In this document: in pieces, positions 3,881 through 42,420 of the stretch
Numbering within the stretch: the stretch's first letter is position 1
Layout of the letters: each line of letters opens with the position of its first letter
Origin: Cyanophora paradoxa CCMP329
Taxonomy: Eukaryota; Plantae; Glaucophyta
Direction of reading: 5' to 3'
Assembly (NCBI GenBank): GCA_004431415.1
Contig: QPMI01000044.1
Coordinates: 124,001 to 188,000 of the forward strand
Length of the DNA: 64,000 nucleotides
Translations under genes and position numbers: made by a program
The notes under the pieces: model-generated
What the model saw: the letters and a program-made list of their open reading frames with translations, nothing else
Database searches by the model: none
What the model was told of the DNA's origin: nothing

Positions 3881-6800
3881 AGGGCCCGGATCGCGAGCAC
3901 GTGGCCGAGCAGCGCCCCCAGCTGCCCCCGCGCCCCTGTACCCCCCTCCGCCATGGCCAGCTCCTTCAGCCTCCCGGGGAGGAGGTCCTGTGGAGGGGGG
4001 GGGGGGGGGGGGGGGGGCGAAGGAGTCGGCGGGCACGCGATCGAGCGGCGGGGAGGGGTACGAGGAACTCGAACCTTCATGAGGTAGCCGTGAAGGCTCA
4101 CCCGGAAGGCCGTGGTCCCGGGGGGAAGGTCACGACCCAAGTCCTGGGGGGTGGGGGTACTCAGCGGCCGGGGAGGGGTCGACGTCGAAGGAGCAGCTCA
4201 TGGGGGTGCGCACGTGAAGGAGCCCCCAGACGCACAGGGGCGCGTCGGGGTGTCCCACGAGGGGAAGAAATGCCGCTTCCGGGTCCCGAACCAGGTTCTC
4301 CAGGACAGCGGGGGCGGTCGCTGCGCCCTCAGGTGAGACCGACCGGTTTTTTCTGCACGAAAAAGAACGGCGTACCCGTAGGGTTGAGCCCGCGGAGGAA
4401 CGCGACGCGTTCGACGAAGGGACGCTGGAGGGGGTACAGGTCGTTGGGGAGCGGCCGGACCACAAGCGGGGGCCGGTCGAGGAAGATCTCGGGGCGGGAC
4501 CTGCGCGGGCGTGGCGTCGGGGGGCGTACTCGCGCGCGCACTCCGACGAGGTCCCCGGGGGTACAGGTGCGCACGCGATCAGGCGCTCGATGTGGGCGGG
4601 GAACGGGCAACCGGGCTGCAGCACGCTGTCGGCCCAGAACTGGGCCTCTGCCTGGAACCACACGCCCAGGTCGCCGGCCGCCAGCTCCGGGGGCGGCTCG
4701 TGCCGGACCGGGGGTACCCCGAGCCCCATAACGGCCGGGCCCATGCTGGCCCACAGGGCGGCCGCGCGGAGCGCGGCCTCGGGGGGTAGGGGCGAGCCGG
4801 GCGGGATGGCCTGGCATTCTATAATTAGCCTCGCGTAGGCGTCGGCGGCCTGCTCGGGGGGCAGCTCCGTGTAGAGGGCGGAGAGGGTCTCCGGGGCGAG
4901 GTTCGAGGGGCTGGAACTCTGGGAAATCCGGTGCCGGTCCTGCGCGGCCGCGCGCATCGCCTCCTGCCACGCGCGCGGGTCGACGCGCGGCTGAGGCGGA
5001 GGCGGAGGCGCCGCCTCCGGAGGCCTAGGGGCCTCCCCCCTTTGCTGGGCCTGGGCCTGCGCCTGGGCGGGATGGGCCCAGGAGGGCGGGGGCCGGGGGT
5101 ACGCGTGCGACGGGGCTGCCGCTTCCGGCGCCCAGGCGGCCGGCGGCGTCGGCTGCGCCTGGTCGAGATGGCCCGGCGGAGGCGCCGCCGTGGGCGGCGG
5201 CAGCGCAGGCGGCGCCCAGCCGGCCGGCGTCGAAATCTCCAAGGGAAGTGGTGCCGACGGGTGCGCTGGCGCAGCGGGCGGGGAAGGGGAAGAAGGGCCG
5301 GCACCGGCGCCGGCCGGCCGCGGCGCGTCGCGGGGCGGACCTCCCACAGGCGGCGCCCAGGCGGCCGCCGATGACGGCGGCGGAAGCTGCGGCTGTTGCC
5401 GCGGCTGCGCCTGGTCGAGATGGACCAAGCCGAAGGGTGGCGGAGAAGCGTGTGCCGGGTCGAGGCGAGCAGCAGCAGCAGAAGCAGCTGCGGCCGGCGG
5501 ATCGGGGGGCTGGAGTCGGCCGACGGCTTCCAGGCCGAGGCCGCGGCTACTGGCCATGGCCGCGGTCGGCGCTGAGTTGGAGACCGGAGCGGGATGCTCG
5601 GACGGCGCCGCGCATCCCTCGCCCAGCGGTGCTGCTGCCGTGTACGAGCGGACGAGGATGCAGCCGTGGACGGGCGGTGCTTCCGGCGCCTCCACGTGCA
5701 ACTCGAAGTGCCGCCCCTCGTGCCAGGACTGACGCTCATGCGTGAGGCGCGAGCGGCAGGCCATGGCCGGCGCGGCGGGGCGGGGCGGCGGACCGAAGTG
5801 GCAACGATTGCGAAGCTCTCGCGGGAGAGGCCGGCGCGGTCGAGGGTCAGGCGCAAGGCGCAGCAGCGGCGGCCCTCGCCGGCCCCCTCGAAATGAAGGA
5901 GGGAAAATTCCGGGTCCTCTGCGCACAGCGTTGCGTACAGCACCGGCGCCCCGTCCACTGCGCCCCGTCCGGCGTCAGCCATGGATCAGATCAGCGCAGC
6001 GAGCGGTGGGGCGGGGCAGAAACGAGCCCGCATATCGAAGCGAGACGGTCAGGGTCCGGCCGGCCCAGAGGCCCGCGGCCCCGGAGGCGTCGCGCAGCTG
6101 CAGCTTCAAGCGGCACTTTGTAGTCACCGTGTAGAAAACGAAGCCCGCCCCCTCGTCATCCGCCGCCATGGGCGAGTAGACTGTCGCCCTGCGCCGCCCC
6201 CGTGATCAGCGCTCCGACCGGCCGGCCCGCCTCAGGCTGGGCCCCCACCGGTTTTGCCCGAGGGTCATGAGAACGAAGGTCGTTCCCGCCGCGCTGGGCG
6301 CCGGGCCGGCGCCCTCCTTCCCCTCCACGCGCGCCGCCGGCGCGGGCGTCGGCGCCCCTCCATCCTCCGAGCTCGCTTGCGGGGGCTGCCGACGGGCCGC
6401 ACGCGCATCTGACGGAAGTAAGCGAGCAGGGTCGAGAGAAGCGCACACGGGGGGCTCGGACCACGTGAAGTACCTAGTGGGACGGGTGCCGAGGCTGCGA
6501 CAGCAGGAGGGACCACCGACGCCGCTTGGAGGGCCCGCTCCGCGGCCGCCGCCGCCGCCGCTCGGGTCGCCTCGGCTCGCGATTGCGCGCCGTTCGCCCC
6601 CTCGAGCAGGCTCTGGATAGGAACGCGCAGGAGCGGCCCGGCGGGGCCGGCCGGCGGAGGCTGCGGCGGGGCTGAGGACGGCGGCCGCGCCTCGTCGGAA
6701 CGGCGGCGGCTCGACGCGGAGGGCTCCCCCGCCCCGCCCCCGCCCCCGCCTCCGCCTGCGGTGGCGCGGGGCCGCTGCCGCCGGAGTTCTGCATGGCGCG

Positions 6801-9385
6801 AAGGGCGGCGGCGGCGCCGGCAAACACGGCCGACCGGAGGGCCTCCTGCAGCGCCGAGGGCTCGAGGTCGGCCCGCCGAGCGAGGCGCGGAGACGGCTGG
6901 GGCGGCTGGGCGGCCTGGGCCTGGCCCTGGGGAGCACGGGGAGACGGGGCGCGATCGGCGGCGTGCGCGGGGCGCAGCTGCGCGGCCGCTAGGATGGCCG
7001 CCCCCCACCCGCTCCGCCATGCGGCGTCAGGGGGAGACGGCTGGGGCTGGGGCTGGGGCTGGGGCTGCGGCTGCGGCCGCGGCTCGGCGCGCTGGGCGGG
7101 GAGCTGAGGGTCCGCCTGCAGCCTCGCAGACGGCGGCGGCGGATACTGAGGCTCCAGCGGAGGCTGCGGCTGGGGGGAAGGAGCGGAGGAGGCGGGGGGA
7201 CGGAGAGAGGCGCGCTCGGGGGTACGCGGACGCTTGCGGGACGCCCTAGCCGAGGATGCGGCTGAGCGGGGCGGAGGCGGAGGCGGCGGCTGGGCCAGGG
7301 AAGCGTGCGGAGGCAGGGCCCCCACGGCGGCGCCCGCGTGGCGCAGCTGCGCGTCCGCGAGGAAGGCCCGCGCCCATCCGCCCCGGCAGGCGGCGTCAGG
7401 GGGAGACGGCTGCGGCTGCTGCTGCGCTTGCGGCTGCGGCTGCGCTGCCGTGAGCAGGGCCTCCCCCTCCCATCGCGGTCCAGCTCCTTCGTCCACGTCG
7501 GGGGACGGGGGCGTAGGAGGCCGAGCCTCCGCGGGGGAACGGGGAGGGGGCCGCGGGGGGTGCCCCGGCTCAGGTGAGCTTGCCGGCGGCTGAGAGCTTG
7601 CATGCCGGTGGGGGGTAGAGGAAAGGGACGGCGCGCAGGGGGGGCCGGCCGCCGGCTCGGGTACAGGCGGGAGCGGGGGGGGTACCGGCGGCCCCGAAGA
7701 AGAAGGGGCTTGACGGCGGCGATCGACGGCGGCCCGTCGCCCGCGGGCGCTCGGGCTCCCCCGCTCGCGCTCCGGCCGCCGGCCCCGGCGGCCCGGACCC
7801 CCGGCCGCCAAAAGCGGGAGCGACGGGGCCGGTCGCGGGTCGCCGCCGGCCTCCGTCGGGCCGGCGCCGCGCCCCGCGCCCTCGCCGCCCCCCTCGTCCT
7901 CCTCGTCCTTGACGACGACGCGGCGCCTGCGGCGGGGCGGCCGCGGCGAGAACAGCTCTTCGTCCTCGTCGCCCTCCTCCTCGCCGCCGCTCGCGCCGCT
8001 CCCGTCGCCAGAAGACCGTTCCTCCTCCTCCTCCACTGGAGACGCCGCACCGCTCCCGCCCGAGGCGGAGGCGGCGCGGCCGGAGGCCCGCCGCCCCCAC
8101 TCCCCCTTCCCCCCCTCCGCCGAGTCCTCTGGCCCCGCCAGCCGCCGCCGGAACGACGGCCGCGCCTTCCGCGGCGCTTTTCCTAATGCGCTGCCGTTGC
8201 CGCTGCTGCTGCCGCCGGCGCCGCCCTCCGAGCGACTCCTCTTCTCTTCGGTCCCTCCGGTCCGACCCGCCGCCGCCGCCGCCGTCGACTTGTGCGAGAT
8301 TCTTGCCATGGCGGCCACCGAGGCGCGCCGGGGTACGTAGACGAAGTCTCGCAGGTCCGCCGGTTCGGGGCGGAAGTCGAAGTGGGGTACCGGAGGATGG
8401 ATTTGCGGTCGGGGGGAGACCTGAGGGGAGGGTACGGGGGAGGCCCGCGGCTCGTCGGAGGGCCATGGCTGTAACGGCCTCTGCACCGGCGTCGGGCTGA
8501 AGGGATTCGGCAGCCTGCGGGAGTACCGGCGTCAAGGCTTCGAAGAGGGTATAAGGGGTGAGGGCAGCGTGGGAGAAGGGGGGGGGGGGGGGGTAGCGGA
8601 CTTTTCGAGCACTTCGTACTTCTTCAGGAACCTCTTTAAGCGCTTGAAGCCCTCCTCGCTCCGGGCCTCCGGACCGTTGGGATCCTTGAACCCCACCCGC
8701 TCGCTCGCATTCGGGCCGAACAGCGCGCCCCACCAGCGCTCCGACTCGTAGCCTGCCCCGGGGCGGCGTGAGCGGCGCGGGCTCGCTGGGAAGGGCTGAA
8801 GGCGGCGTGCGGCGAGGCGCACGGGCATTGGGGACGAGCCGGCGGGCGCCCGGCCCCAGGCAGATGAGGTTGAGCCGGTCGAGGTTCCGGGCTGCCTTCT
8901 CCTCCGAGTCCACCAGCGGCGTGCGAATCTTCTGAAGAGAGACACGGCGCATCGTCAGAGGCCGCGCGAAGGGCCGGTGCCGGGGCCGGGTACGGACGCA
9001 CAGACAACTTCAGCGCTAGCCTGCCGCTCCAGCGAAAGAAGGACCGCCAGCGCGGAGCAGCCTCGGCGGGGCGCCTCTCATCCACGTACAGGAGCACCCC
9101 GGGGTACCGGGACGTCGGTTCAGCTGCAGGCGCGCGCTGCGCGCCGCCGCCGCACGGCTCCCGAGACGGCCCCGCGCCCGGCTCCTCAGCTTCCTCCTCA
9201 TCTATTCCTACGATGTCTATCGGATCCTCCTCTTCTTCCAGCGCCGCATTCGAATTCCCGCCGGCGCCTGCAGCGGCGCGCGGCGAGTTGCGGGTCAGCC
9301 GCGGCGCGCCGCCATGGGCGCTTGGGCGCGAGCAGCGATCTCCTTGCATGTTAAGAACCGATCTAGGAGGGATAGGAGGTCGCAC
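3850..9385 (-). CDS. Family copy 1: spliced AP2-like + STAT-like/CudA-like + unknown C-terminal domain protein (5' end approximate)
   Basis: Exons encode SRYPGVLLYVDERR..PRWRSFFRWS|KIRTPLVDSEEKAARNLDRLNLICLGPGA (8820-9115) and GYESERWWGALFGP. The module LKLQLRDASG..TLTVSLRY..FAIVATS|SWHEGRHFELHV lies at 5645-6290, AALWASMGPAVMGLG at ~4740, and the gene ends VLAIRALALKAQSQGN* at 3850. Blocks are collinear with the other four copies. Confidence 0.7.
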
Positions 9386-14310: not shown

Positions 14311-14968
14311 GTTTGCGGGCGGGCTGAAGCTCTGGCACGCGGTCGACAAGGTCAGAGCTTGTGGGCGACGAACGAGAAATGACCGGGTGCTGCGGACCTC
14401 GGTTTAATAACCTCGCGGTAATGCGAGGCGTATGATGGAGACCGGCGAACTTACTAGGGGGGTACGCGGGCGGTCACCGCAGCCGGCCGGCTCCGCACCG
14501 GCCTAGCGCGCGCCATCCCCGAGCGCTCCAGAGCGCGCACGGCATCGACCACGACAGAATTCGCGAGTCCTACCCACGTTCGCCCGGCGAAAGCACCATC
14601 CCGTGTCGCGCACCGGCGCTGGTGCCAGCGAGTCCCACATTCTAACTGCACCGCCTGCGCTCCGGCGCTGCTGCCTGATCCTCTGCAGCCAACCTGCAGT
14701 TCCGGCGCCGCTTATCCGATCGTTGCATCTCGTTCTTCAAAGCTGTGCCATGAGAGCGTCAGCTGCGCCATGAGAGCCTCCGCGAGAGCATCTGCGAATT
14801 CATAGCTCAGCGGCTCGGCGCGGCAAACCCGGAGCGCCCGGCGGACAGCATCAGTCTAGAGCTCTTCCGAAGTTCAGCAGTGAGCTGCTCGTTGGGTCTG
14901 GTCCGTTCTCTACGTCGTCAGAAAACGGCTCTCGGATCCTGCAGCAGCGTGGCCGAGCGCGCGGTCCG

Positions 14969-17900
14969 ATGGGGGCGCGGATGCCGTCGCGGCCGGCCAC
15001 GCTGCAGCTGCCACGGACAGGAAGCGGTGCGCTGCCGCGCCTCGCGCCGCCTCTCGCCCTCGTTTCCGATTCCTTTGCCACAGAAGAGTCCGAGTGCTCG
15101 CCCGAAGACCCCTCGACTGGAGGACAGCCGGGCAGCGCTGCCGGTGGCGAAGGCGGGGGCGACAGCAGCACCGGCGGGGGGCGCGGGTCCCCGGCGTCCC
15201 GGTCTCGGTACCCCGGTGTGAACCTTGAACATGACAGAAGGCGATCCGCCAGTGCTGCGCCGCGCTGGCGGTCCCACTTCTACTGGTGCAAATCTTGCTC
15301 GAGGGTGTGTGCATCGCTCTCCTCCCCCATACACCGCCTCTGCTGACGGGCCCTCTTCTCTTCACGCAGCTGAGCACGCCGCTGGCGGACTCGGAGGAGA
15401 AAGCGGCTCGGAACCTCGACCGGCTCAACCTCATCTGCTTGGGGCCGGGCGCCCGCCGGCTCGTCCCCGAAGCCTGTGCGCCGGCCCCTCCCTTCCCAGC
15501 GAGCCCGCGCCGCTCACGCCGCCCCGGGGCAGGCTACGAGTCGGAGCGCTGGTGGGGCGCTCTGTTCGGGCCGAGCGCGAGCGAGCGGGCGGGGTACACG
15601 GATCCCGACGGCCCCACGGCCCGGAGCGAGGAGGGCTTCAAGCGCTTAAAGAGGTTCCTGAAGAAGTACGAAGTGTACGAAACGTACGCCGCCGACCCCT
15701 CCCCTCCTCCGCGTACCCTCCTCGGAGCCCTAACGCCGGTACCCATGCAGGTCGCCGCCACGGGAAGCGCCGCTGGCTCTGGAGGAGGCAGCGGGGGCCT
15801 CCAGCAGCGACGGGGCGGCCCGGGCCTCCCCCCCTCCGCCGCCCCGGGCGGAAGGCTCCGTCCGAGAGGCGCCGCCGGCGCCGGCGGAAGGCGAGGGGAC
15901 GGCGACGGCTTCGGCGCCGCCGCCCACCGAGGAGCCGCGGGCCTCGCCTTCAACCAGAGGCAGAGCGAAGCGGCGGCGCGCGGCGGAGGCGCCGCCTCCC
16001 CCGGGCCCCAGCGGCGGCGGCGGCTCGGAAGGCGGCGGGGGCAGCAGCAGCGGCGGCGGCGGAGAAGAAGAGGCGCCGCCTGAGGCCGGGGGCGCCTCCG
16101 AAAGCGACGGCCGCGGGGCGGGTCCGGCCGCGGCTGCAGACTCGGACTCGACCGGATCTGAAGCGAAGCGGAGGCGCGTGGACGGCGGGGCGGAGGCCGG
16201 CGGCGGCGGCGGAGGAGAGGAGCGGCGCTCGGAGGTCGCGGCGGAGGGCGGCGGCGGAGAGGCGCTGCGGGAAACGCCGCCGGCGCCGGCGCCATCGTCT
16301 TCGAAGGCGGCGGCGGGCGCCGCGGGCGTCGAAGGGGCGGACGGCGCGGCGCCCCCGCTCCCGCCGGCGGATTTGGCGGACGGGGGCGGCCGCCCGGCCC
16401 CGCCGGTCCCTCCTCGGGCGAGGCCGAGGGCCCCTCGCCCGCCTCTTCGGCTTCTCCGGTCCCGGCGGGGCCAAGGGCGCCGTTCCTGCGCCGGACGCTC
16501 CGGAGAGCGGAAGATCCGGCGGCCCGCCGGCGCCGGCACGGGCGCCGGGCCCGCGCCGCTGGGAGCGGGGCCGCGTGCCGGACCAGCCCGACGTCACTGC
16601 GCCCGGCGCCTGCGCCGGCGGCGGCGGCCGCCTCGACCCCTCAACGCCAGTGGCTTCGAGGTGAACGGCTGCGGACGTCGCTGGGCCCGGGGGGCGTGGG
16701 GACGGCTGGGGCGCCGTCGGCACCGTCGCAGGCGGCCGGGGCAGCCTCGACCCCTCAGCGTCAGTGGCTTCGAGGCATACGGCTGCGGCGAAAGGGATCA
16801 TCGGGCCCCGCCCACGTGCACCTCGGCGCCGGTGTCTCGACGGGCTCGCGATCGGGCGCCGCTGGGGCGGCGCCGGCGGAGTCGCCGGCCGGCGCCTGGA
16901 GCCCTCAGACCCGGAGACTCCGGCGGCTCCGGCGCCTAGAGGCCGACCAGGAGGAGGAGGAAGAGGAGGAGGAGGAGCAGGAAAGGGCGCCCGGAGGAGG
17001 AGCCGAGTGGGGGAGCGGGGGCGAAGATCATCGGCGGGGGGCTCCATCGCCCTCGCCGCCCCCGCCGCCCCCCCGCCGGCGTCGCCGCCGCATCGCAGGA
17101 GACAGTGGAGACGAGGAGGCCCCTTCCTCCTCCTCCTCCTCCTCCTCATCCGGTACCCCCATCGGCGCCCCTCTCGAGCGCGCGGCCGCCGCCGCTCGCT
17201 CGCGCCTGATCGCTCCGCTCCTTTCTTCCTTCCTGCCCGCCCGCTCGCACAGGCTCGCGGTCGCCCCGCGTCGTGGTGGTGGCGACGGATGACGACAGTG
17301 CGGACGCGGCGCCTTCATCTTCGTCTGGTACCCCGGGATCCCGTCCCCTTTCGCCTATGTGCCTGCAATCGTGTCCGACCTTCGCGGTTGCGTGCAGGCC
17401 GTTCGTTTAAGTCCGACTCGGCCGCTCGGAGTGGAAGGGAGAGGGGGGCGTTCCCGTCGGCCCCGCCCGCGGCCGCGGCGCCGGCGTCCGTTCCGCCCCC
17501 ATGTTGGATCGCGGCCGCGCCGCCGCCGGCGGCAGCGGCAGCGTCTTCGGGTACCCCGGCTTTCCCGCCCCGTGCTTTCCCGCCCCTTTCTCTGACCTGC
17601 TTTCGGTCACGCCTGCCCCGCGCAGGCCGTTCGTCCAAGTCCGACGCGGCCGTTCAGAGCTTGAGGGCGGGGGCCCCGTCCTCGTCCGCCGCGGCCGGCG
17701 TGCCCGCGCCCGCGGCGCCGGCGCTGGCGCCGGCGCCGGCGTCCGTTCCGCCTTCGTGTTGGGTCGCGGCAGTCCAGCCAGCCGAGCGGCCGGCGCCAAA
17801 GGCGGCCGCCCCGCCGCCGCCGGCAGCGGCCAAGGCGCCGCCAGCCGCCGCATCCGCGCCCAGCTTCGCGGCGGGTGAGCGTTCGCCCTTCGCCCTTCGA

Positions 17901-22098: not shown

Positions 22099-23759
22099 AT
22101 GTCGATCGCCCGCCTCGGCCTCGCGGCATCCACAAGCGCCGCCCTCGCGGCCCGCCCCTGCGCCGCCCAGCTGCTCGCAGCCGCGCGGCCGTGCGCGCCG
22201 GCGTGCGCCTCGGCGCTGGCCGTCGGCGTCGCCGCGCTCGGCCTCCGGCGCGCCAGCGCACTCTTCAGGCAGCCGGCGCGCGCCTTCAGCACCAGCCGCC
22301 CCGCCGCCTTCCCTCTCCCCGCGCACAAGGTGCGGCGCGCGCGGCGCCGGCATGCGCGCACGTGCATGTGCACGTGCACCGTGGCACATGCGCGCGCGCT
22401 TCGGCCTTCGCATGCGCTGACGCGCGCCGGGGCGCAGGCGGCGGAGATTCGGGAGAAGGAGATCCACGACGGCGGGCACCTGCACGTGAGCCCCTACCTG
22501 CCCCCCAACATGGACTGGAACCAGGTCCGCCCGCCCCAATCCCGGCTCGCGCCCGCGCGCGCGCGCGCCCGGCTCGTGCTCACGTGCGGGCGGGCGCGGG
22601 CAGGTGGACCTGGTGACGCGGGTGGCGCCGGAGGGGGCGTCGGACTGGGTGGCCAAGGGCGTCGTCAAGTTCCTCCGCTTCTGGGCCGACCTCCTCTTCT
22701 CCAAGGTACACCCCGCCCCACCCCGCACCGCCCCGGCCCTTGAGAGATTGGGCGCTGACACGCGCCCACGCGCCGGCGCAGCGGTACGGGCACCGCGCCA
22801 TCGTCCTCGAGACCGTCGCCGGCGTCCCCGGCTTCGTCTCCGGTGCGCCCGAGGCGGCGAGGCGGCCGGCGCCGGCGCGCCAGACGCGCGCAGCTGACTC
22901 AGTCGCCCGGCCCGCAGCTATGTTCAGCCACCTCCGCTCACTCCGGAACATTCAGCACGACAACAACCACATCCAGGTGCTTCGCTTTCAATTGAACCTC
23001 GAAGTTCTGCCCAAGCTCAGTCTGACCCGTCGCTGCGCGCGCAGACGATGCTGGACGAGGCGGAGAACGAGCGGATGCACCTGATGGTCTTCATGGAGAT
23101 CGCCAGGCCCAACCTCTTCGAGCGCGGCCTCGTCATGGCCGTCCAGGTGCCCCAAACCCGACCTCAAATATTATTGATTATCTTGCATTCCTTACTTAAA
23201 CTCTCGTTTTCCCAGGCCGTCTTCACCTCCATATACACGGTCCTCTACGCCTTCTTCCCAAAGACGTGCCACCGCTTCGTGGGGTACCTCGAGGAGGAGG
23301 CCGTCGTCTCCTACACGCAGTACCTCAAAGAGATCGACGCCGGCCGCATCAAGAACATCCCCGCCCCGAAGGCCCGCCCCCCCGCCCCCCAGCCCGCTCC
23401 TTAAGTTTCACCGGCCCCGCCCAAATCTGACGCCGAGTACACAGATCGCGATCGACTACTGGAGCCTGCCGGCCGACGCGACGCTGCGGGAGGTCGTCGT
23501 CGCGACGCGCGCCGACGAGGTCAACCACCGCGACGTCAACCACTACATCGCCGGTGCGCCCCGCGATCGCGCTCGCGCCTCCCAAGACTTCGCCTAGGCC
23601 TCCGCCGCTCGCATTTATTTAATTTGGGCGTTCTTCCTGTCTGCAGATGAGATCCTCGAGCGGCGCGCGGCGGCCTCGGGACCCGGCTCGAAGGGCGACC
23701 GCGACGCCTTCCCCCCGAGCGGCGCCGCCGGCCACGGGCACGGGCACGCCCACGCTTGA
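22099..23759 (+). CDS. AOX: Alternative oxidase, paralog 1 (9 exons, N-terminal mitochondrial-type leader)
   Basis: The spliced product has the diiron motifs [27 protein letters not shown] and [12 protein letters not shown]. The N-terminus is Ala/Arg/Ser-rich with no acidic residues, and the protein ends GHGHGHAHA*. Confidence 0.96.
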
Positions 23760-25025: not shown

Positions 25026-28000
25026 TCACCAAAACGGCGCCATTGCATGAAAAGAAGTAGCAGTAGCTGTAGTAGCAACAGCTGCAGCTGTAGTAGCAGT
25101 AGTAGAAGGAGTGTTGAAGAGGAGGGCGCGGACGGCAACCACGGAGCCGAGGAGGAGCCGCAGCCGCCCCGGCGCCGCGCGCCCGAGCTCCAGCACGCCG
25201 GCGGGCCCGCCCTGTTGCGTGCGCACTCGTTTAGGGAAGCGCAAACTATCAAAGGCCTTGCTAAATGAATATCGACGCGGATATATATATAGATCTAGAA
25301 GGGCGGGGTCGAGCGGGGTCGATCTAGATCTATTAGAGAAGGGCGAATCGAAGGCCCGCGGCCCCCCCCTAGATGTTATAATTATCTAGATGCAGCCGGA
25401 CGGCGACACCGCAGACCGCGGCCGCGGGGCGGAGCGCACCAGGCCGGTGAGGTACTGCCTGACATAGAGGAACTCGCGCGTCGTCCCCGGGGGGAGTCGC
25501 CCCTTCAGATCCTGCGCGCGCAAGCAGGAAAAGATAAGATCAGTATGCGAAACCGTCCAGTCGTCTCAAGGAAGGTTGTCGGCCGAGAGTTAACGGTGTC
25601 AGAAAAATATAACAGCGAATAAAACGCTATGTTTGATGCGCATTAAATACTCTATGATGAGCGGGCGCCGCCATTAGCGTTATAATTACGTAGTTGATCG
25701 CACGACCCACCCACTTCGAAAGAAGCGCACCCAGAGCAGCGCGTCGACGGATTTCTCGGGATTCGCGAGGTCGCTCAGGTGAGCAAAGATCGGGTTGCTC
25801 AGCAGCTCATCCAGCACGTCGCGCGCCGACACTGCGCCGGTCGCGATCATATGAGCGATGCCGAGCGGAGTGGATCGACATCGATCGCGAGAGCCTCAGC
25901 TCACGGCGGCGCACTGGCGGGGCTGCGCTGGAGGATGCCCAAGACCCGAAGAATGACGGCCCGCTCCAGCGGGGCGGAGAGGGGGGCGAGCGGGCGCAGG
26001 CACAGGACGTGAGCGGAGAACAGCGAAGCGTCGCCTCTAAAGACAGCGCCCAGCCGCGAGTGAGTCACGAGGGCGGCAGAGGACCCGCGGCTCGATCAGA
26101 GGCGCACGTGATCAGGGGCTCGAGCTCCGGATCGAAGCAGCTGCGCGGACGCAGCATTTCATGGGCCCACACGTTCGCCCCAACGTCCTGAGGGGCGCGG
26201 GGCGGCGGCTGGCCGATGCCCAGCACCGCGGGGCCCATGCTGGCCCACAGCGCCGCGACGTAGAGACGGACTCCGCGCGCGTCCTGCTGCTGCGCGTCCT
26301 CCGGCTGCTGATGCTGCCCCCTGACCAGCGCGGCGAACGCGCTCGCCGCCTCTGCAGGCGAGAGCTGCAGCGCCAGGAATGTCTCCGGCGGAGCCGTGGC
26401 TCCAGCCCTCAGGCGAGCAAGCACGAGCTCGCGCAGCTGGCTCTGCCAAGCCGAGGGACTCGGCACTTGCTGCAAGTTCGGCGCTACCGCAGCCGCTGGT
26501 CCCGTAGGCTGCGCCAGCGGATGTGCCGCGCCATGCGCCCAAGCCGCGGCGTGCGTGGGCGGCTGTGGCTGCGGCTGTTGCTGCATATGCCAACCAGCCG
26601 GCAAGACCTGAACGTATTGCAGAGGCTGCTGCGGTGACCAGCCCCACTGCCCTGCCGACGTCGAAGGGAGCTGCTGCTGCGGCTGCAGCTGAGGCCCCGG
26701 CGCCGGAGCCGTCGGCTGAACCGCGGGCTGAGGCTGAGGCCCCGGCGCCGGAGCCGTCGGCTGAACCGCGGGCTGAGGCTGAGGCCCCGGCGCCGGAGCC
26801 ATCGGCTGAACCACGAGCTGAGGCTGAAGCCCCGGCACCGGAGCCGTCGGCTGAACCGCGGGCTGAGGCTGAAGCCCCGGCGCCGGAGCCATCGGCTGAA
26901 CCACGGGCTGAGGCTGAAGCCCCGGCGCCGGAGCCGTCGGCTGAACCACGGGCTGAGGCTGCAGCCCCGGCACCGGAGGGATCGGCTGATCCGTGGGCCA
27001 TGGCGCTGGCGCCCGAGCCGTCGGCGGCGCCGCGGGCTGTGGCGCCGGCCCCGGCGCCGGAGCTGTCGACTGAACTACGGGCTGTTGCGCCGGCTTCTGA
27101 GGCGGCGCCAGCGGCCGCGGCCCGTGAGCAGGCTGCGCTGGGCGGCCAGTGGGCGCCGCCGCGTGGGGAGGCTGCTCCTGGCACTTCGCGATCAGACCCG
27201 CAGTCCCGAGTTGGGTTCGAGGCGCCGGGTTCAGCTGAGAGGCCGCGGCCGGAAGGTCACTGGAGCTGGAGCTTGCGACACGCCCGCGCGGCACGGGCAG
27301 CGGCGCCGGCGGCGGCAGCAGCGGTGGTGGAGACAGAACTGACGCGCCGCCGCCGGACGGTCGAGCACCCGGCTGCTGCGGCCCCACTGGATCCGAGGGC
27401 GCCCCTGGCGGCAGGCTCGGAGACGCGCTGGCGCCGACGCTGGGCTGCGGAAGCGCCGATCGAAGAGGCGCCACAACGTCGCTGCGTTGAGGGGCGTAGA
27501 TGGACGCCGGCGCCTCTACCGCCAGCGTTTTGCCCAGCGGCTCCGGCCACAGCGCACTCTCCCCTGATCACGAGGGCCGAGTCAGCAAAGCCATCGTGTC
27601 CAAGGTGGGCGGGCGCGGGGGACCTACCGGCATCGGGGATGGGATGAGACCTCGAGAGGCCGACAGCGCCCGCGGGTGGCGTCGCGGCCGTGCCAGCGCC
27701 TTGCGACTTCGACCGCGAACGCCGCTGGCTCGGCAGCGCTGTGGTCGGATTCAGAGGCCGGCCAGGCAGCCGCGAGCGCCGCGGGCCAAGAGGCGCGCAC
27801 ATTTTTCGCGTGCGTGAACGAGGATGCGGCCGTGGACGGGGGGCCACCCCCGAGCCTCCACGTGCAACTCGAAGCGGCGCCCCTCGTGCCGGTGCTGCCG
27901 TACGCGTTGGCGCCTCCACGTGAGGCGCGACCCCGCCCGCAGGCTATGGGCGGCGCGGCGGGGCTGCGGACCGAGGTGGTCGTGATTGAGAAGCTCTCGT

Positions 28001-30393
28001 AGGAACAGCCGGCTTCGTCTAGGGTGAGATGGCAGGTGCGGCAGGGGCGGCCCCCGCCGGCGCCCTTGAAGAAGACCGGCGGCAGGTCCGCCGCCGCGTC
28101 GCCCGTCCCCGCCAGCCCCGACGCGTCCACTGCGCCCCGCCCCGCATCAGTCCGAGCGGCGCAGCACGGGGTGAAACGGGGCAGGGACAAGCCCTCGTAG
28201 CGGAGGGAGATGCGGAGGGTCCGGCCGGCCCAGACGCCCGCGGCCCCGGATGCGTCGCGCAGCTGCAGCTTCAAGCAGCGCGTAGTGATCGCTGTGTAGG
28301 CGGCGAAGCCCGCGCCTTCCTCGTCATCCGCTGCCATGGGCGAGTAGACGGGCGGCCCGCGCCGTCCTCGTAATCAGCGCTCCGACCGGCCGGCCCGCTC
28401 CCCGCAGGGTGCACGTGCCCACCTGCTCGTTCCGCGGCTCATGAGAACGAAGGTCGTTCCCGCCGCGCCGGGCGCCGGGCCGGCGCCGCCCTTGTCCTCC
28501 ACGCGCGCCGCCGGCGCGGGCGCCGGCGCCCCGCCATTCTCCGAGCTCGCTTGTGGGGGCGGCCGAGGGGCCGCACTTGCGTCTGGCGGAAGAGGGGTAA
28601 GGAAAAGGGCCGAGGAGGCGGAGCGCGGGTCTCACAGAGCCAGGCATCAGTTGAAGAAGGCGCTGGGGTGGCGGCAGAAAGGACAGAGCGTCCCCGCTCG
28701 GCTCCCGCTGCTGTGCTTTGCCCGCGGTCGTCGCCGCTGAAGAGCCCGTCGCGATCGGCCGCCCTGGAGGGACGGGGGCGAGAGGAGGCGGAGAGGGACG
28801 CCGTCTGCGCGCCGGCGTCTGGCGGGGACACACTCAGACGCGGCGAACGGCGACGTGGCGAAAAGTGCATACAATTCTCACCCGTCGAAACGTTCGACGC
28901 GGAGGGCTCAGCAGAGCCGGCGGGTGTGAGCTGGGGAACGTTAACGTTCAACCAGGTCCAGGCGGGAGACGTGGGCCGCGGCTCCGCCGCTGCCGCCTGA
29001 GGGGCGGCCGCTGCCGTCCCGCCCGGCGGGACGGGCGGAGCGGGCTGGCCTCCCGTCCCTCCACTATGAGCGGCCGCGTCGGACTTTGGAGGGACGCCTG
29101 CACGGGGCCGCAGCGGCCAGGCGTCAGCGGCAGTCAACGTCCGTGAAGGGTTCAAAGGGGGGGCGGCCGCGGGGAGCACCGGGGGGCGGCGGCTCGGCCT
29201 TCACAGCCGGCGGCGGAGCGGCGGCTGGCGGCGCGGGAGCCTCGGATGGACCTGCACAGACCGCGGCGCCGGCGGTCAGGCGCGGCGTGGCCGGCGGACC
29301 GTGAAAGAGGGGCGGCCGCGGGGAGCACCGAATGGGACGGGAGGGACGAATTTGATCTCCTCCGCCGCCGGCGCCGCCCCCGAACCGATTCCTGCGCGAA
29401 ACCGCACCGATCAGAGCGAGCAGAGGGGCGCCAAGAAAGGCGGCGGGGGGCACCAGAGAGCGGCAGCGACGGATCCGCCCCCGGCGCGCCGCCCTTCTCG
29501 GCCCTTCGCTCCTCCTTCACGGCTCGAGGCAGAGGGGACTGGAGGGGCCCTCCCTTCTCCTCCTCCTCCTCGCGCCGGCTCGCGGCGGCCGGCTCCTCCT
29601 CATCCGCCTCCGCCTCCGCCGCTGCCTCGACCGGTGAGGCCGCCTGGCCTGCTGCTGCTGCTGCTGCTGCTGTCGCCGGCGCCGCCGCCGCCGCCGCCGC
29701 CACCGTAGAGGCCCGCGCCGGAACTGAAGAGTACGGCGAACTGGGGGGTACAGGCCGTCAAGGCTCCGAGGAGGGTACGGGGAAGGGAGAGGGAGAGGAG
29801 GAGGCGGACCTTTCGAGGACGTCGTACTTCTCCAGGAAGCTCTTGAAGCGCTTGTACCCTTCCGCGCTCCGGGCCTCGGGGCCGTCGGGATCCGCGTACC
29901 CCACCCGCTCGCCCGCGCTCGGCCCGAACAGCGCAACCCACCAGCGCTCCGACTCGTAGCCTGTCCCAATTGCAAGGCTGCGTGAGCGGCGACTCGGTGG
30001 GAAGGGCGGGAGGCGGCGCGCGGCGCGGCGCACGGGCTTCGGGGACGAGCAAGGAGGCGTCCGGCCCCAAGCAGATGAGATTGAGCCGATCGAGGTTCCG
30101 AGCCGCCTTTTCCTCCGAGTCCGCTAGTGGTGTGTACAGCTGCGGGGAAAGAAGAGGGCGCGTCAGGGCGCGAGGGAGGAGAGGGGAGAAGAGCGGGAGG
30201 GGGGTGGGGGGGGGAGGAGGGGGGGAAGGAGGGGGGGAGGGGGGAGGGGGGAGGGGGGGGGAGCTCTCTTCATCGTCAAGTTGGAGCTCCAGATCCAGCT
30301 CGATCGCCATCGCTGCGGGGCGCCTAATTGCCGCTTGTCGTACCGGGTCACCCCAGGGTACTGGACCGGCGGCACGCCGCGGGCTCGCGCCCC

Positions 30394-30433
<40 letters not shown>

Positions 30434-30830
30434 TGCCGCCGCTGCCATTGCTGGAAGGGCCTCCAGTCGCGAGTTTCGCCACGGCGCTGCCGCTGAAGCT
30501 GAAGCTGCTGCTGCTAGCGGGCGGCTCGAATCCGCCGCTCGCCCCCTCATCCGGCTCCTCGTCGTCCTCGAGAATGTCTACGTCCTCCCCTTCTGACCAC
30601 AAGTCCTCCGGGCGCTCAGGGTCGGGGGCCCCGGTGTCCGGGATGGAGGCGCCAGCGATCGGCCCGATCTGCTGCTCCCGCGCCGTTTCCGCCACATCCC
30701 CCGATCCTGCGCTGGCAATGATGAGACGAGCGTGCGGCGGGAGCTCGAGGCGAGGCGAGTGGCGCGCTGCCGCCGCACCGCTTTCGGTCCGTGGAATCTT
30801 GGATGGCCGCATCGGCGTCCGCGAGGACTC
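25026..30830 (-). CDS. Family copy 3: AP2-like + STAT-like/CudA-like + unknown C-terminal domain; apparent 1-bp frameshift near 30362
   Basis: EQQIGPIAGAS..LWSEGEDVDIL, then YPGVTRYDKR..RWRSSWIWS|LYTPLADSEEKAARNLDRLNLICLGP (30035-30370). The module is at 27810-28460, followed by YVAALWASMGPAVLGIG and an end at LLGSVVAVRALLFN..FW*. Confidence 0.65.
26690..26980 (-). repeat. Coding minisatellite, 45-bp unit (PTAPAPGPQPQPAVQ), about 6 copies
   Basis: GGCTGAACC(G/A)CGGGCTGAGGCTGA(G/A)GCCCCGGCGCCGGAGCC repeats with a 45-bp period. Confidence 0.92.
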
Positions 30831-31779
30831 GAGCTCGCCGTGTTACGAGGCGGCAGAGAACGCGCCAGCTGCAGTTCGAACGCGCCGCTCACTGCTGGTG
30901 AGACTTTTGCGGGAGCTGCATCTGCCTGCAGTCCGCCGAGCGCCAAAGCATTGCTGCGCTGCGCTGCTGATACGGCTGGCGGGAAACGCGCTCGCCGGCC
31001 TCACCGCTGGAGGGCGGTGCGCTGGGAGCTTACTAGGGGGGGTACTATGCTCCGCACCGCAAACTCCGCAGCTGGCCGGCTCGGCACGATGGCACCTTCC
31101 CCCCGCGCGCGCCTCCGCCGAGCGACACACACGTCCCACCGCAGCTGATCGGATCGGCACCTGCATCATGCATCATGCATCATGCGCGCTACGTGTCCGG
31201 CCACGGCTGTGCGCGCTACATGTCCGCTTCTGCGTCGACGCCCTAGGCCTTACTCATATGCATGCGCCAGGCTGCTGCCCGGACGCCTCGCACGCCGCGC
31301 CCTCGCAAAACCGGTACCATAGGCCTCGCCGCGCGCCGCGCGCCCCTTCCGAACGCCAACGCCAACGACTCCAAGGCTCCAACCTTGCCCCGCACCGCGC
31401 TGGTCATGACGCACACTCCGCGACACAGGCTGCGACGCGTACGGCTGCGGAACGAACCCGCTCAGCTCATGATCATGATCAGCTGCAGGCTGCGGAGTGG
31501 CGCACCCGTTCCTAGGCCTCCGCGTGCCGCACCCCATCGCCATCACGATCGCGCAGATCTAGATCTAGAACTCCGATCGTCGCCTCCTCTGAGCGCGCTG
31601 CGGGCGTCCCCGCAGTCCCGCTCCCCTCCGGCGCCGGCCTCTTTGCGAAGCCCGTACCCCTCGTCGACGTCGCCGCCGGGCCTTCGACACCATCCGGGGT
31701 ACGCGCGCGCTCTCCGCTCCGCCGGGCCGCTGCCGGCCGACCGACGTACCCCCAGACGCGACCGCTCGAACTGCGCTCC

Positions 31780-32629: not shown

Positions 32630-32663
<34 letters not shown>

Positions 32664-33006: not shown

Positions 33007-33225
33007 CACGTGCTGACGTCGACGGCCCCCCGGGCCCGGGGGCCCCAGGGCCCGGGGGCCCCAGGGGCCTGCATATCCTGCAATTTCGTATTCAATACGT
33101 ATTCAATTAAGCAATGAGAGGAAAGCGTACTGCTGCTTAGAATACGTATATATAACTTCAAGCTTATTACATTACAATGAAAATAATTCTGCGTTGTCAT
33201 AAATTAAAGTTGCTGGTGTAACCAA

Positions 33226-36200
33226 TCATGATCGCTGAGGCGGGGCCATCGCATGAACTCGAAGAGAAGCAGACGAGGAAGAGTTGAAGAGGAGGGCGCG
33301 GACGGCAACCACGGAGCTGAGGAGGTCCCTAAGATGCCCCGGCGCCGCGCGCCCGAGTGCCAGCACGCCGGTGGGCCCGCCCTGTCGCGCGCGCGCGCGC
33401 ACGCTTGTTTAGGGGAGGGGAAGGAGGCGGGGCGCGCGCGCGCCGGCCGCATAGACGTTCTAGATTTAATCATCTGCCTCCGTTACTGTTTAGGAGGACA
33501 CCGCCCCAGTGAAGTTGTTATAATCATCTAGATGCAGCCGGACGGCGCGCTAGAGCGGAAAGGGGCGCGCGCCGGCGCCGACCATAGAGACCGCGGGTCA
33601 CGATCGCGTTTTTTCGGAGCGCACCAGGCCGGTGAGGAACTGTCTCAGAATATGGACCGCGCGGCTCATTCCGGGAGGACGCTTGTCTCTCAGATCCTGC
33701 GCATGCGCCAGCAGACGATAGTTACGCAGGCAGCGTCTTGATCGATGAAGCGCAGGCGATCGATATCGTCTTGGAGCGCACCCAGAGCAGCGCGTCGACG
33801 GACTGCTCGACATTCGGGAGGTGTCCGAGGTGAGCGAAGATCGGGTTACTCAGGAGCTCCCGCAGCACGTCGCGCGCCGACACTGCGCAGGGCGACGATG
33901 AGCAGAGCAGAGCGAACGGGCGGAAACTATGAAATGAAATCGTGAAAAGCACCTGCCCCATTGCGCTCAAGGATGCCTGCGATTTGGACCACTACGGCGC
34001 GCTCCAGTGTTGGGGAGAGGAAGGGCAGCGGGCGCAGGCTCGGGACGGTAAGGAAGAACAGCTCCGCGTCGCCTCTGCGGGAGGCGAATTCGAAGACGAG
34101 CCGCGAGCTCGAGTCAGCTGTGAAGGCGCAAGGACCGCGGCTCGCGATCGATCAAAGGCGCACGTGATCAGGAGCTCGAGCTCGGGGTCGAAGGGGCATC
34201 CCGGCCGCAGCATGTCGTCTGCCCACGCTCCAGCGTCCTGAGGGGCGCGGGGCGGCCTCGGCCGGCCGATGCCCAGCACCGCGGGGCCCATGCTGGCCCA
34301 CAGAGCCGCGACGTAGAGACGGACCCCGCGCGCGCCCTGCTGCTGCGCGTCCTGCGGCCGCTGCTGCTGCTGGCCCCTGACCAGCGCGGCGAACGCGCTC
34401 GCCGCCTCCGCGGGCGCGAGCTGCAGCGCCAGCGATGTCTCCGGCGGAGCCGTGGCTCCGGCCCTCAAATACACGAGCACGAGCTCGCGCAGCCAGTTCT
34501 GCCACGCCGAGGGGCCCAGCGGCTGCAGCGCTAGCTGCGGGCCCAGGGGCAGAAAAGGTGTCGCACCATGCATACAAGGCGATGGCTGTAGCTGATGCTG
34601 CAGCGCTAGCTGCGGGCCCGGGGGCAGAGAAGATGCCGCGTCATACATACAAGGCAATGGCTGTAGCTGATGCTGCAGCGCTGGCGCTGGCGTCATCGCG
34701 TGGCAGCCCGCCGGCAGCGCCAGCAGGACCGGTAGCGCCGGTGCTGGCGGCACTGCGTGCCAGCCCGCCGGCAGGACCGGTACATGTGCATGCTGCAGAG
34801 GCGGCTGCGGCGCCGGCTGCGGCGCAGTACAGTCCAGCCCCGGGACCCGCTGCCCTGTGGCCGCTGACTGCAGCGGAGGCCAAGGTGCCGGCCATATGGC
34901 CGGCTGCGGCTCTAGATATTGGGGCGGCACTGCCGCTGCGTGCGGAGGCTGCACGGGGCCGCCGCCACTGGCGCTGGAACCGGCTCGCATGGCAAGCTCG
35001 TCCAGAGTTGGAGACGTGCTGGCGCCGGCGCCGGCGCCGGGCTGTGGGAGAGGCGTTCGATGCAGGTCTCTGCTGCTCCTTCGAGGGGCCATGCCGGATA
35101 CAGGCGGCTCTCCCGCCCCAGAAAACGACTGAGACGAGGCCGAGTGTACTTGCCGGTGCCCTTTTCTCGCCATCGATTCCGGATCTGGCGCCGTTTCTTC
35201 TGATCACGATCGCGAGGACCGAGTCAGCAAAGAAATCGCGGCGAGGGACGGTTCGAGAGACCGACCGCGCCGGGGAGAAGTGCGGGAGGGCTCGCATTCG
35301 GCTGCCTCCGGCCGAGATCCGGGAAACGCAGGCCTAGGGGGGTCGAAGGGAGCCGGGGAAGGGGCCGCTGGCCCGACGGCGCTGCTGATCGCGATGGCCG
35401 CGATGGCCGCGGGCGGCGCCGCGCACGCCTCCCTGCCGCGGACCGCCGCGGGCAGGGCCGGTTGCGCCGGCGGTGCGGGGGCGAGGCTCAAGGAAAGCGC
35501 GGAAGGGGAGGCGGCGGGCGAGGCGGAGGAGGCGGGATCGGCGCGGGCCGCCGACGGGTCGGGGAGAACAGCTGCAGTTGGCAGGTCGCAGGTATGAAGG
35601 CGTCCGACGGGGCCCAGCCCAGAGACGGGAGGCGTCACGGCCGCCGCGCCCAGCGACTCCGACTGCGAGCGCCGCTGGCTTGGCAATGCTGCGTGACGGC
35701 TTGGGGCCCGCCAGGCGGCGCGTCCGGTTCCGGGGGCCACGGACCGTGCGCGCGCGTGTGGACGAGGATGCGGCCGTGGACGCGGGGCGACCCCCGAGCC
35801 TTAACGTGCAATTCGAAGCGCCGCCCTTCGTGCCGGCGCTGCCGCCCCCGCGTGAGGCCCCGGCCCGGCAGCCATGGTCGGCGCGGCGGGGCGGCGGACC
35901 GAGGAGGCACGAATGGCGAAGCTCTCGCGGGAGAGGCCGGTTTCGTCGAGGGTGAGGTGGCAGGCGCGGCAGCGGCGGCCCTCGCCGGGCCCCTCGAAGA
36001 AGGCCAGCGGCAGGTCCACCGCGTCACCCGTCCCCGCCGGCCCCGACGCATGCTGCACCGGCCACCCGTCCACTGCGCCCGGCCCCGCGTTAGTCATGGA
36101 TCAGAACAGCGCAGCGCGCGGCGAGGCGGGGCAGGAACGAGCCCGCATATCGAAGAGAGACGGTCAGGGTCCGGCCGGCCCAGAGGCCCGCGGCCCCGGA

Positions 36201-39200
36201 GGCGTCGCGAAGCCGCAGCTTCAGGCGGCGCGTCGTGACCACCGTGTAGGCCGCGAAGCCCGCCCCCTCCTCATCCGCGGCCATGGGCGAGTAGGCCTCC
36301 GGCCTGCGCCACCCTCGCGATCAGCGTCCCGAGCGGCCCGTTCCCCGCAAGAAACTCACCGGCTCCTTCCGCGGTTCATGAGAACGAAGGTCGTTCCCGC
36401 CGCGTCGGGCGCCGGGCCGCCGCCGCCCTTCTCCTCCGCATGCGCCGCCGGCGCGGGTGCCGGTGCCCCGCCATTCTCCAAGCTCGCTCGTGGCGGCTGG
36501 GGGCGGCCGACGGCTTCGAATCCAAGGCCGTGACCAGTGGCCACTGACGGCGCCGGCTGGGCGGCCGGAGCCGGCGACTCGGACGGCGCCGCCGATCCCT
36601 CGCACTGCGGCGCTGCTGCGGTGCACGAGCGGACGAGGATGCGGCCGTGGACGCGGGGCGACCCCCGCGCCTTCACTCGCAATTCGAAGAGCCGCCCTTC
36701 GTGCAGGTGCTGTCGGCGGCCCCTCCGCGTGAGGCGCGCGCCGCAGGCCATGGTCGGCGCGGCGGGGCGCGCGGCGGACCGAGGAGGCACGAATGGCGAA
36801 GCTCTCGCGGGAGAGGCCGGTTTCGTCGAGGGTGAGGTGGCAGGCGCGGCAGCGGCTGCCCTCGCGATCGCCAGCCCCCTCGAAGAAGACTAGCGGCAGA
36901 TCCGCCGGGTCGCCCGTCCCCGCCGGCCCCGACGCGTGCTGCACCGGCGCCCCGCCCACTGCGCCCGGCCCCGCGTCAGCCCGCGCAGCGCAGCGCGGAG
37001 TGGGGCGGGGTAGGGACGAGCCCTCGTATCGGAGCGAAACGGTGAGGATCCGGCCGGCCCAGAGGCCCGCGGCTTCTGAGGCGTCGCGCAGCTGCAGCTT
37101 GAAGCGGCGCGTAGTGATCGCGGTGTATGCGGCGAATCCCGGCCCCTCCTCGTCCGCCGCCAGAGGAGAGTACGCCGCTTTGAAGTGCGGCATCAGTATT
37201 CTTCTCATGAGAATAAAGGTCGTTTCCGCCGCGCCAGACCGTGGGCCCGCGTCCCCCTCCTTCGAAGGGGGCGGCAGAGGGGCCGCACGCGCGTCTGCTG
37301 GAAGAGGGGGTGAAAAATGCGCCGAGGGGCTTATGCGGGCACGGGATGGCTCTCACCGGACAAAGCAGCGGCTGAAGCGGGCGCCAGGGTGGCGGCAGAA
37401 GGAACAGGACGCGTCTGCTGAGCGGACGCTGCTGGAACGGTCGGGGCGGGGCCGGCATCGGCACTGACCGGCCGGCTGCGCATGCAACAGGAAGGCGATA
37501 ATGGGGACGCGGTGAGGGCGGAGAGGGACGGCGCTGGACGGTCGGGGCACGAAGCCGAAGGAGGGAGCCAGGACGGGGATGGGCGACGGCTCCGGTCGAC
37601 GCTGGCCAACTCCGGCCACGGGCCCTCGGGCAGCCCCGCATCGAGGCTCCAAGAAAGTGCGGGAGGGGAGGCGGCGGGCGAGGCGGAGGAGGCCGCAGCT
37701 TCGTACGAGGAGGAGGCGGGGGCGGGCAGACGGAGCGTGGCGCCGCCGGTCGATCGCAAGGAGGGCGCCGCCGGTCGATTGCGAGGAGCGCGCGGGGCGG
37801 GGCCGGCGCCGGCGCTGAGAGTGAGAGGCGGGCCGAGGCTAGCGGCCGGGGCCTGCGTGGGACTGGAGGGCGCTGCAGCTTCTTGCCCCGTGAGAGGAGC
37901 GACGCTGAGTGGTACGCGGGGTGGCTGGCTCGGGGAAGGGGGCTCCGCCGCGGAGCCGCCGCGGTCGACGGCACGGGCCGCGGCCTCCGTTCCTCCGGAG
38001 GGCTCGCGGCCCGCTGGTGGGCCGGGGCCCGGGCTCCGCGGCGACTGAACGATCGGGGGCGGCGGAGAGGTCGATCGCGCGCCTTTCGGGGGTTCCGTCA
38101 GGAGCGGCAAAGTCAAAGGACGAGCAAACGCTCACCCGCCGCGAAGTCGGGCGCGGACGTCGACGTCGGGTGGGCGGTGGCGGCGGGCGGCGCCTTGGCC
38201 GCTGCCGGCGGCAGGGCGGCTGCCCCCGCTCCCGGCGGCCCGGCTGCCTTGACTGACGAGCGCCTAGGCCTGCGGCGGGGCGGCCGCGTGGATGAGAGCT
38301 CTTCGTCCATCTCCTCTTCCGCTACCGGCGGCGGCGCCGCCGCCGCCGCGGGCCGCTGGTGTACCCGTCTGGGCGCTGATAGTTTCAATCCCCCGAGCCT
38401 CCCGATCGCAAATCGTCGGGGATCCGGGGGCGCCGGCGCCCCCCGCGGCGCCTCTCCTCCTCCTCCTCCTCCGCCGCCCCGGTCGCCCTCCGACTCCCCG
38501 CCGCTCCCGCCCGGAGGCGGCGCCTCCGCCGCGCGCCTCCGCTTCGTTCCCAGTCCGGCCCGGCCCGCCGGCGGTGCCCCCAGAGCCGCCGCCACCACCG
38601 AGATATACGCCCTCGCGGCCGCAGAGGTGCGCCGACGCTCCCGCACGAACGGCTGGCTGCTGGCGGCTGGCGACGCCTCGGCGGCTTCGGGGGGCAAGGC
38701 TCGGAGGGGCCGTCGGGGGGCGGCGCGGGGAAGGGGTACGGGCGAGGCCCGCAACTCTCCCGCGCGCCGCGGCGCCCTGTGCGACTGCACAGGAGCGGAG
38801 GCGTCAGACCGGCTCGGCGACCTGTGAGGGAACCGGGGTCAGAGATCGGAGGGCGCGCGTAAACGTGTTTGGGAGGGGTATCGGACTTCTCGTAAACGTC
38901 GTACTCCTTCAGGAAGAACTCGATGCGCCTGTAGCCCTCCTCGCTCCGGGCCTCGGGGCCGTCGCGATCCGTGTACCCCACCCGCTCGCCCGCGCTCGGC
39001 CCGAACAGCGCGCCCCACCAGCGCTCCGACTCGTAGCCTGCCCCGCGGCGGCGTGAGGGGCGCGAGGGAAGGGCGGGAGGCGACGTACGGGATCGAGCTT
39101 CAGGGACGATCAAGGGGGCTCCCGGCCCGCAGCATATGAGGTTGAGCCGATCGAGGTTCCGAGCCGCCTTCTCCTTGGAGTCCGCTAGCGGCGTGCTATA

Positions 39201-39392: not shown

Positions 39393-39433
<41 letters not shown>

Positions 39434-42380: not shown

Positions 42381-42420
<40 letters not shown>

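Follow-up and report, generated by a model that had tools for sequence, protein, structure and literature searches.

We analyzed a stretch of 64,000 nucleotides from the glaucophyte Cyanophora paradoxa CCMP329 (assembly GCA_004431415.1, contig QPMI01000044.1, positions 124,001 to 188,000 of the forward strand), here called the window, in which some members of a group of five paralogous genes carry a spliced protein module and others lack it. The original prediction, made from the DNA letters, took this module for a beta-sandwich DNA-binding core resembling those of STAT-like and CudA-like proteins and combined it with AP2-like exons. Here we report that the module is a real, expressed, and lineage-restricted domain cassette; its function is unproven, and its identity as a STAT/CudA-like DNA-binding domain is unconfirmed.

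Five paralogous genes and the distribution of the module

The GC content of the window varies between 52 and 79% per 2-kb bin and amounts to 65-79% across the region of the five paralogs. Self-comparison of the window (blastn) located these genes, c1 to c5, at ~4100-9300 (c1, minus strand), ~14400-21100 (c2, plus strand), ~25600-30900 (c3, minus strand), ~33775-40130 (c4, minus strand), and ~40250-46230 (c5, plus strand). Common to all five, in the same order and orientation, are an N-terminal region composed of YPGV...RWRS and DSEEKAARNLDRL pieces and a C-terminal region marked by the motif LWASMGP. The C-terminal region lies at 26080-26475 in c3 (minus strand; RNA joints 25831>25915 and 26036>26108), with counterparts at 4586-4981 in c1, 20300-20686 in c2, 34133-34528 in c4, and 45486-45881 in c5. 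A search for annotated gene models by means of this region found none. Directly upstream of it, several paralogs contain internal tandem repeats with periods of ~90-270 bp and Pro/Ala/Gln-rich products (19517-20326, 26676-27126, and 44775-45457).

All motifs that the original prediction had assigned to the module are present, on the minus strand and in the places where it had put them, and its count of 1, 0, 1, 2, and 0 copies in c1 to c5 is correct. A profile hidden Markov model (HMM) of the module was compared with all stop-free fragments from the six reading frames of the window and matched at four places only, namely 5582-6202 in c1, 27793-28370 in c3, and 35743-36317 and 36563-37259 in c4 (downstream copy c4a and upstream copy c4b, respectively). 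Per-exon E-values at these places ranged from 1e-12 to 1e-54; elsewhere in the window, including plus-strand c2 and c5, the best E-values were only ~0.01-10. The distribution of zero, one, or two copies is far beyond chance. When aligned, the four DNA copies are 76-83% identical. The module is a discrete spliced unit as proposed, but it is larger, consisting of four exons rather than three. The additional exon lies upstream and ends in ...GTTFVLM, and a TTFVLM-type leader is also found in the two external homologs, P0001 and P0003, described below.

The site of the c3 module is occupied in c5 by a low-complexity, Ala/Pro/Ser-rich open frame of ~1.07 kb (43016-44090, plus strand) with no HMM match. 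Exons on both sides of this site are homologous between the two genes according to blastn, with c3 28815-28988 corresponding to c5 43016-42850 and c3 26688-27670 to c5 45222-44243.

Exon structure in spliced RNA

Part of c3 is contained in ten public runs of one organism, and RNA contigs from four of these (X1, X2, X4, and X5; 3 samples, 2 studies) were compared with positions 25600-30900. The runs are labelled only "RNA?"; since the spliced joints preserve the reading frame, the contigs come from processed RNA. On the minus strand they delimit GT..AG introns at 25832-25914, 26037-26107, 27564-27627, 27739-27800, 27895-27971, 28583-28635, 28819-28881, and 29252-29328, together with two noncanonical introns at 28130-28192 (GC..AG, three runs) and 28357-28422 (GT..GG, one contig). 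Every junction of the c3 module is borne out by these contigs.

The first module exon of c3, exon 0 (28423-28582, minus strand), encodes a Pro/Ala/acidic leader ending in ...TTFVLM and is bounded by the joints 28582>28636 (four runs) and 28355>28422 (one run, boundary then refined). Exon A (28193-28356, minus strand), which encodes YSPMAAD...LKLQLRD...SLRY, is defined by RNA joints between the introns 28357-28422 upstream and 28130-28192 downstream. Exon B (27972-28129, minus strand; FFKGAG...HLTLD...ESFSI) is set by the joints 28129>28193 (three runs) and 27894>27972 (two runs), and exon C (27801-27894, minus strand; HEGRRFELHV...VHGRILV) by the latter joint and 27738>27801. A single RNA contig of 874 nt joins exons B-C-D-E of c3.

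HMM matches and homologous splice sites place the corresponding exons in the other copies, all on the minus strand. The c1 module (5582-6408) comprises exon 0 at ~6249-6408, exon A at 6028-6188, and exon B at 5794-5957, and its exon C runs from 5728 downward and continues into one long exon. In c4a (35746-36496), exon 0 lies at 36360-36496, exon A at 36143-36303, exon B at 35900-36072, and exon C at ~35746-35838. In c4b (36563-37256), exons 0 and A are fused (37022-37256) and are followed by exon B (36780-36958) and exon C (36563-36709). The latter reads via a short linker straight into exon 0 of c4a, the two forming one fused exon. The fusion of exons 0 and A in c4b reflects the loss of most of intron 0, of which an in-frame remnant (37183-37204) contributes ~8 codons that separate the TTFILM strand from YSPLAAD.

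Each of the four module copies has kept the homologous splice sites intact. At intron 0, c1 and c4a have GT-AG and c3 has GT-GG; in c4b the intron is lost in frame. The c3 intron ends in GG where its c1 and c4a counterparts have AG, and one RNA contig is spliced at the homologous position, so that this is an apparent GT-GG intron. Intron 1, between exons A and B, is GC-AG in all four copies (28130-28192 in c3, 5958-6027 in c1, 36073-36142 in c4a, and 36959-37021 in c4b), and its use is confirmed by RNA in c3; intron 2 is GT-AG in 4/4. Because of the GC donor of intron 1, the first internal junction could not be placed in the original prediction. Intron 1 measures 70 nt in c1 and c4a, owing to a 7-nt insertion, and 63 nt in c3 and c4b, where it is free of stops, so that exons A and B look continuous there. 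Candidate joints for skipping of the cassette were rejected: despite their high depth, they had sides of 20-21 nt, noncanonical ends, or inserted letters and were treated as cross-matches of GC-rich low-complexity words.

Relatives outside the window

An HMMER search of 1.84 billion protein cluster representatives, with a profile built from exons A and B, returned one true relative, P0001 (E = 1e-37), a C. paradoxa protein of the EukProt set. A bacterial repeat protein, P0002 (E = 2e-4 over 33 positions), was judged spurious. P0003, a second C. paradoxa relative from EukProt, came from a word-indexed search with the module region of P0001. Both proteins carry the module N-terminally, at residues ~45-205, followed by weak TPR matches toward the C terminus, and outside the module they have nothing in common with the window paralogs.

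The splicing of P0003 matches what the RNA joints lead one to expect of the window copies. For P0001, the public model (tig00020800_g13732) apparently keeps the intron before exon C; residues ~183-223, which should hold the HEGRRFEL strand, are out of frame, and the frame is regained at ...GRILIHT. A 90%-cluster search with a whole-module profile found no relatives among proteins of 94-299 amino acids, and a single-protein query found none in JGI metagenome contigs. As far as the databases reach, the module appears to be lineage restricted, being known only from the C. paradoxa lineage and there from at least two gene families, between which the cassette has moved.

Cassette phase, duplication, and selection

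The four module exons of c3 measure 160, 164, 158, and 94 nt, adding up to 576 nt or 192 codons. The exon before the cassette contributes a single nucleotide of a codon at its end, the exon after it opens with 2 nt, and from these RNA-defined junctions it follows that both flanking introns are in phase 1. With such symmetrical phase 1-1 flanks, the whole cassette can be gained, lost, or duplicated without a break in the reading frame. The hallmarks of exon shuffling found here are flanking introns of the same phase, a total length that is a multiple of 3, and occurrence of the module both in tandem (c4) and in an unrelated gene context (P0001 and P0003). In c4 the two copies are tandem duplicates, offset by ~871-879 bp. 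Whereas the c1 module and c4b share the read-through type of linker, the c3 module and c4a share the spliced 3' end.

In exon-by-exon codon alignments, pairwise ratios of nonsynonymous to synonymous change (dN/dS) among module copies were 0.34-0.73, at dS values of 0.28-0.46, and the module coding sequence is, by this measure, under moderate purifying selection. The internal introns of the module are 75-86% identical between copies and thus conserved about as much as the exons, and the best-matching partner copy differs from exon to exon. Intron conservation and these changes of partner suggest that some gene conversion may have occurred among the copies.

The equal conservation of introns and exons could also be taken to mean that, in this high-GC region rich in repeats, the copies are annotation noise or pseudo-exons undergoing decay and encode no functional domain. 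The long spurious open frames that high GC produces, as well as exon C being out of frame in the public P0001 model, would be in keeping with this. We consider it highly improbable in view of the spliced RNA with its frame-preserving junctions, the excess of synonymous change, and the retention of open frames and splice sites in the four window copies and in P0003.

N-terminal exons and extent of the transcript

The exons regarded as AP2-like in the original prediction (YPGV...RWRS and DSEEKAARNLDRL pieces) were located by regular expression and translation at 30014-30372 in c3 (minus strand), with counterparts at 8583-9118 in c1, 15197-15702 in c2, 38868-39379 in c4, and 41192-41708 in c5. 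By eye they show an AP2-type pattern of three strands and a helix, but the AP2 label (PF00847) gained no support from Pfam, PDB profile searches, feature searches, or folding. In Pfam, each N-terminal exon piece had no match at E up to 10 when searched singly, the putative domain being split by an intron. The profile of the five paralogs gave chance matches only in the PDB (DotG and a carboxypeptidase), and the feature search gave no usable match. An AlphaFold2 (AF2) model of a contiguous N-terminal piece of 113 amino acids had a predicted local distance difference test score (pLDDT) of 43 and contained helices only, without a sheet. The AP2 identity of these exons is accordingly a label that lacks support and is not thereby refuted.

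A second conserved piece, GYESERWWGAL...RSEEGFKRLKRFLKKY, follows the DSEEKAARNLDRL helix and by eye reads as strand-strand-helix. It is found at 38868-39047 in c4 and 41529-41708 in c5, where it shares the open frame of the helix piece, and at 15523-15702 in c2 and 8583-8762 in c1, where it stands in another frame.

Spliced minus-strand contigs tile c3 from 25730 to ~29640 and so include the C-terminal region, the cassette, and ~1.2 kb upstream. Farther upstream, RNA coverage is confounded by low-complexity repeats, and no coverage falls in the bins above 30202. From the strict collinearity of the five paralogs we infer that the YPGV/DSEEKAARNLDRL exons and the cassette would belong to one mRNA.

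Other repeats in the window include a 94-bp unit at 2165-3321, in tandem in ~12 copies of 99.5-99.8% identity (self-blastn), and a segment of ~1.84 kb that is triplicated in near-identical form (99.5%) at 49315-54830. An inverted copy of this segment, 87% identical, lies at 21895-23674 and matches 47859-49644.

Predicted fold and sequence searches

The fold of the module was modeled with AF2 on P0003:36-206 as a full-length surrogate, the window exons forming further rows of the alignment. The resulting low-confidence model (mean pLDDT 52.7, predicted template modeling score 0.47) is all-beta and contains nine strands. It is too poor to refute a p53-like fold, and it neither establishes nor excludes the unrelated fold that the original prediction named as its refutation. 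In comparisons with the PDB (Foldseek), in a shape-based search of the ESM Atlas, in an exhaustive VIA-align run over 48,161 representative chains, and in VIA-align on the 1,000 PDB chains ranked highest by Foldseek, the model matched only generic sandwiches of the Ig/FN3/macroglobulin type. The best structural neighbors were sandwiches of the Ig/FN3/IPT type, and the topology of the nine-strand model is not discriminated from FN3 or IPT. Three RR-x-L-x-L hairpins were considered as an internal repeat and rejected, with local alignments no better than those of shuffled sequences (p = 0.06-0.36).

Pfam-A searches with hmmscan at E up to 10, covering the exon open reading frames, P0001, and P0003, found no relevant family; in particular, the STAT_bind profile (PF02864) had no match in the exon open reading frames or P0003:36-206. 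Searched against PDB sequences, the module profile matched eIF5A only (E = 0.53), which we take as a chance match. As stated in the original prediction, there is no SH2 signature: neither the window open reading frames scanned nor full-length P0001 and P0003 gave an SH2 match.

By the features of a protein language model, the three best clusters (0.92, 0.91, and 0.90; 181-194 of 256 features shared) belong to Pfam PF28397 (DG1062_N), a family that accounts for 8 of the 30 nearest clusters. LAG1-DNAbind (0.85), the Calmodulin_bind domain of CBP60 (0.78), and SPT23_MGA2_DBD (PF25603; 0.75) come next. The latter three families, to which DG1062_N is not counted here, comprise beta-sandwich domains found in transcription regulators.

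Discussion

The module encoded by the cassette could be a true homolog of the p53-like core of STAT, CudA, or NDT80 and thus a second direct DNA-binding domain of AP2-type factors. Nine predicted strands, as in p53-like sandwiches, a basic composition (isoelectric point 9.35), and the presence of LAG1-DNAbind and other DNA-binding beta-sandwiches of transcription factors in the feature search speak for this idea. The order of motifs (basic residues, F.L.V.A, V.G.ILV(R/H)) presumably resembles that in the C-terminal strands of the NDT80, STAT, and CSL domains. We nevertheless regard such homology as quite improbable. At E up to 10 there was no Pfam match to STAT_bind, NDT80_PhoG, P53, or LAG1; the PDB gave no sequence match; and the HMMER search of the 1.84 billion representatives found no Dictyostelium, plant, or animal protein. 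No STAT, p53, NDT80, or CSL chain was among the top structural matches from the 48,161 chains, and the domain, at ~150 amino acids, is smaller than those DNA-binding domains and comes without an SH2 or linker domain. Of the original interpretation, the discrete, optional, spliced all-beta module is supported, but a specific tie to STAT or CudA lacks support.

We propose instead that a self-contained cassette of four exons encodes a Pro/Ala/acidic leader and a basic all-beta domain of ~150 amino acids that would fall in the Ig/FN3-like sandwich class. By virtue of its symmetrical flanking phases, the cassette could be inserted, deleted, or tandemly duplicated in a frame-neutral manner, which would account for zero, one, or two copies in five otherwise collinear paralogs, the ~875-bp duplication in c4, and the N-terminal cassette of an unrelated, weakly TPR-like family. 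The domain would provide nuclear regulators with an accessory sandwich for binding macromolecules, situated next to a primary DNA-binding region and serving in DNA contact or dimerization as do the Ig-like RHR-N domain of CSL/LAG1 (PF09271), the IPT/TIG domain in the C-terminal part of the Rel-homology region, and CBP60-type domains (PF07887). Differences in cassette copy number may then give the paralogs different specificities for targets or partners. We assign a probability of about 0.5 to the prediction that the module is an accessory DNA-contact or dimerization sandwich beside primary DNA-binding domains.

Several points weigh against this assignment. No single RNA molecule links the module with the N-terminal "AP2-like" exons. 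The Arg-rich composition could simply reflect a GC content of 70-78%, and values of dN/dS of up to 0.73 indicate weak constraint. In the feature search, scores of at least 0.9 were also reached by 4-10% of shuffled sequences, and the method is uncalibrated for protein parts. DNA binding, nuclear localization, and partners are all predicted properties.

The same weak constraint fits a domain of generic Ig/FN3-like type that acts as a spacer or in protein-protein interaction, has no role in nucleic acid binding, and by its copy number would alter linker length or valency. In line with this possibility, the structural neighbors are all sandwiches of the FN3, Ig, or macroglobulin type, c2 and c5 hold a low-complexity linker of similar length at the same position, and the module is also found on a TPR-like, and thus protein-interaction, protein. 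We are doubtful of it: the feature search prefers sandwiches of the transcription factor type to FN3 and Ig families, and in P0001 and P0003 the basic domain is followed by KRxRR-type stretches that resemble nuclear localization signals.

A further reading, which we consider unlikely, is that the module represents an undescribed, glaucophyte-restricted DNA-binding sandwich, distantly related to p53-like, CSL, and CBP60 domains, that was spread by phase-1/1 exon shuffling between families of transcription regulators. If so, the paralogs would differ in how many additional DNA-reading heads they carry (none, one, or two), and this would be a nonmetazoan case of modular transcription factor evolution through exon shuffling.

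Should the accessory sandwich bind DNA or partners, the locus would exemplify variation of domain copy number among recent paralogs, brought about by an exon cassette that leaves the reading frame unaffected, in a photosynthetic lineage that branched early and whose transcription factor repertoires are almost unstudied. Irrespective of function, the module constitutes a new lineage-restricted domain family with exon boundaries verified by RNA. Our results also provide corrections for gene models, namely a conserved GC-AG intron, a GT-GG intron that is used, and a public model with its last exon out of frame.

Comparison with known systems

With the STAT DNA-binding domain and the core of Dictyostelium CudA, the module presumably has no more in common than a beta-sandwich in broad outline, in which a basic segment precedes the final two strands; the searches gave no sequence, profile, or structural match, and the module proteins are without SH2 or linker domains. 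Ig-like domains of transcription factors, namely RHR-N of CSL/LAG1, the DNA-binding region of CBP60, SPT23/MGA2, and the C-terminal IPT/TIG domain of Rel-homology proteins, also rank among its closest known counterparts. The nearest domain by features is DG1062_N, which occurs in eukaryotic protists, is named after Dictyostelium DG1062, and is of similar size (clusters of 108-214 amino acids). It has no sequence match to the module by hmmscan or HMMER database search, with the proviso that the local Pfam may or may not hold this model, and a literature search on its function found none.

The cassette itself is most readily compared with the phase 1-1 modules of metazoans, such as the Ig, FN3, and EGF cassettes. 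It resembles these in its same-phase flanks, in its tandem duplication, and in its presence in unrelated families. By contrast, its host is a glaucophyte-type alga, three very short introns (56-77 nt) split it internally, and its carrier proteins look intracellular or nuclear, not extracellular.

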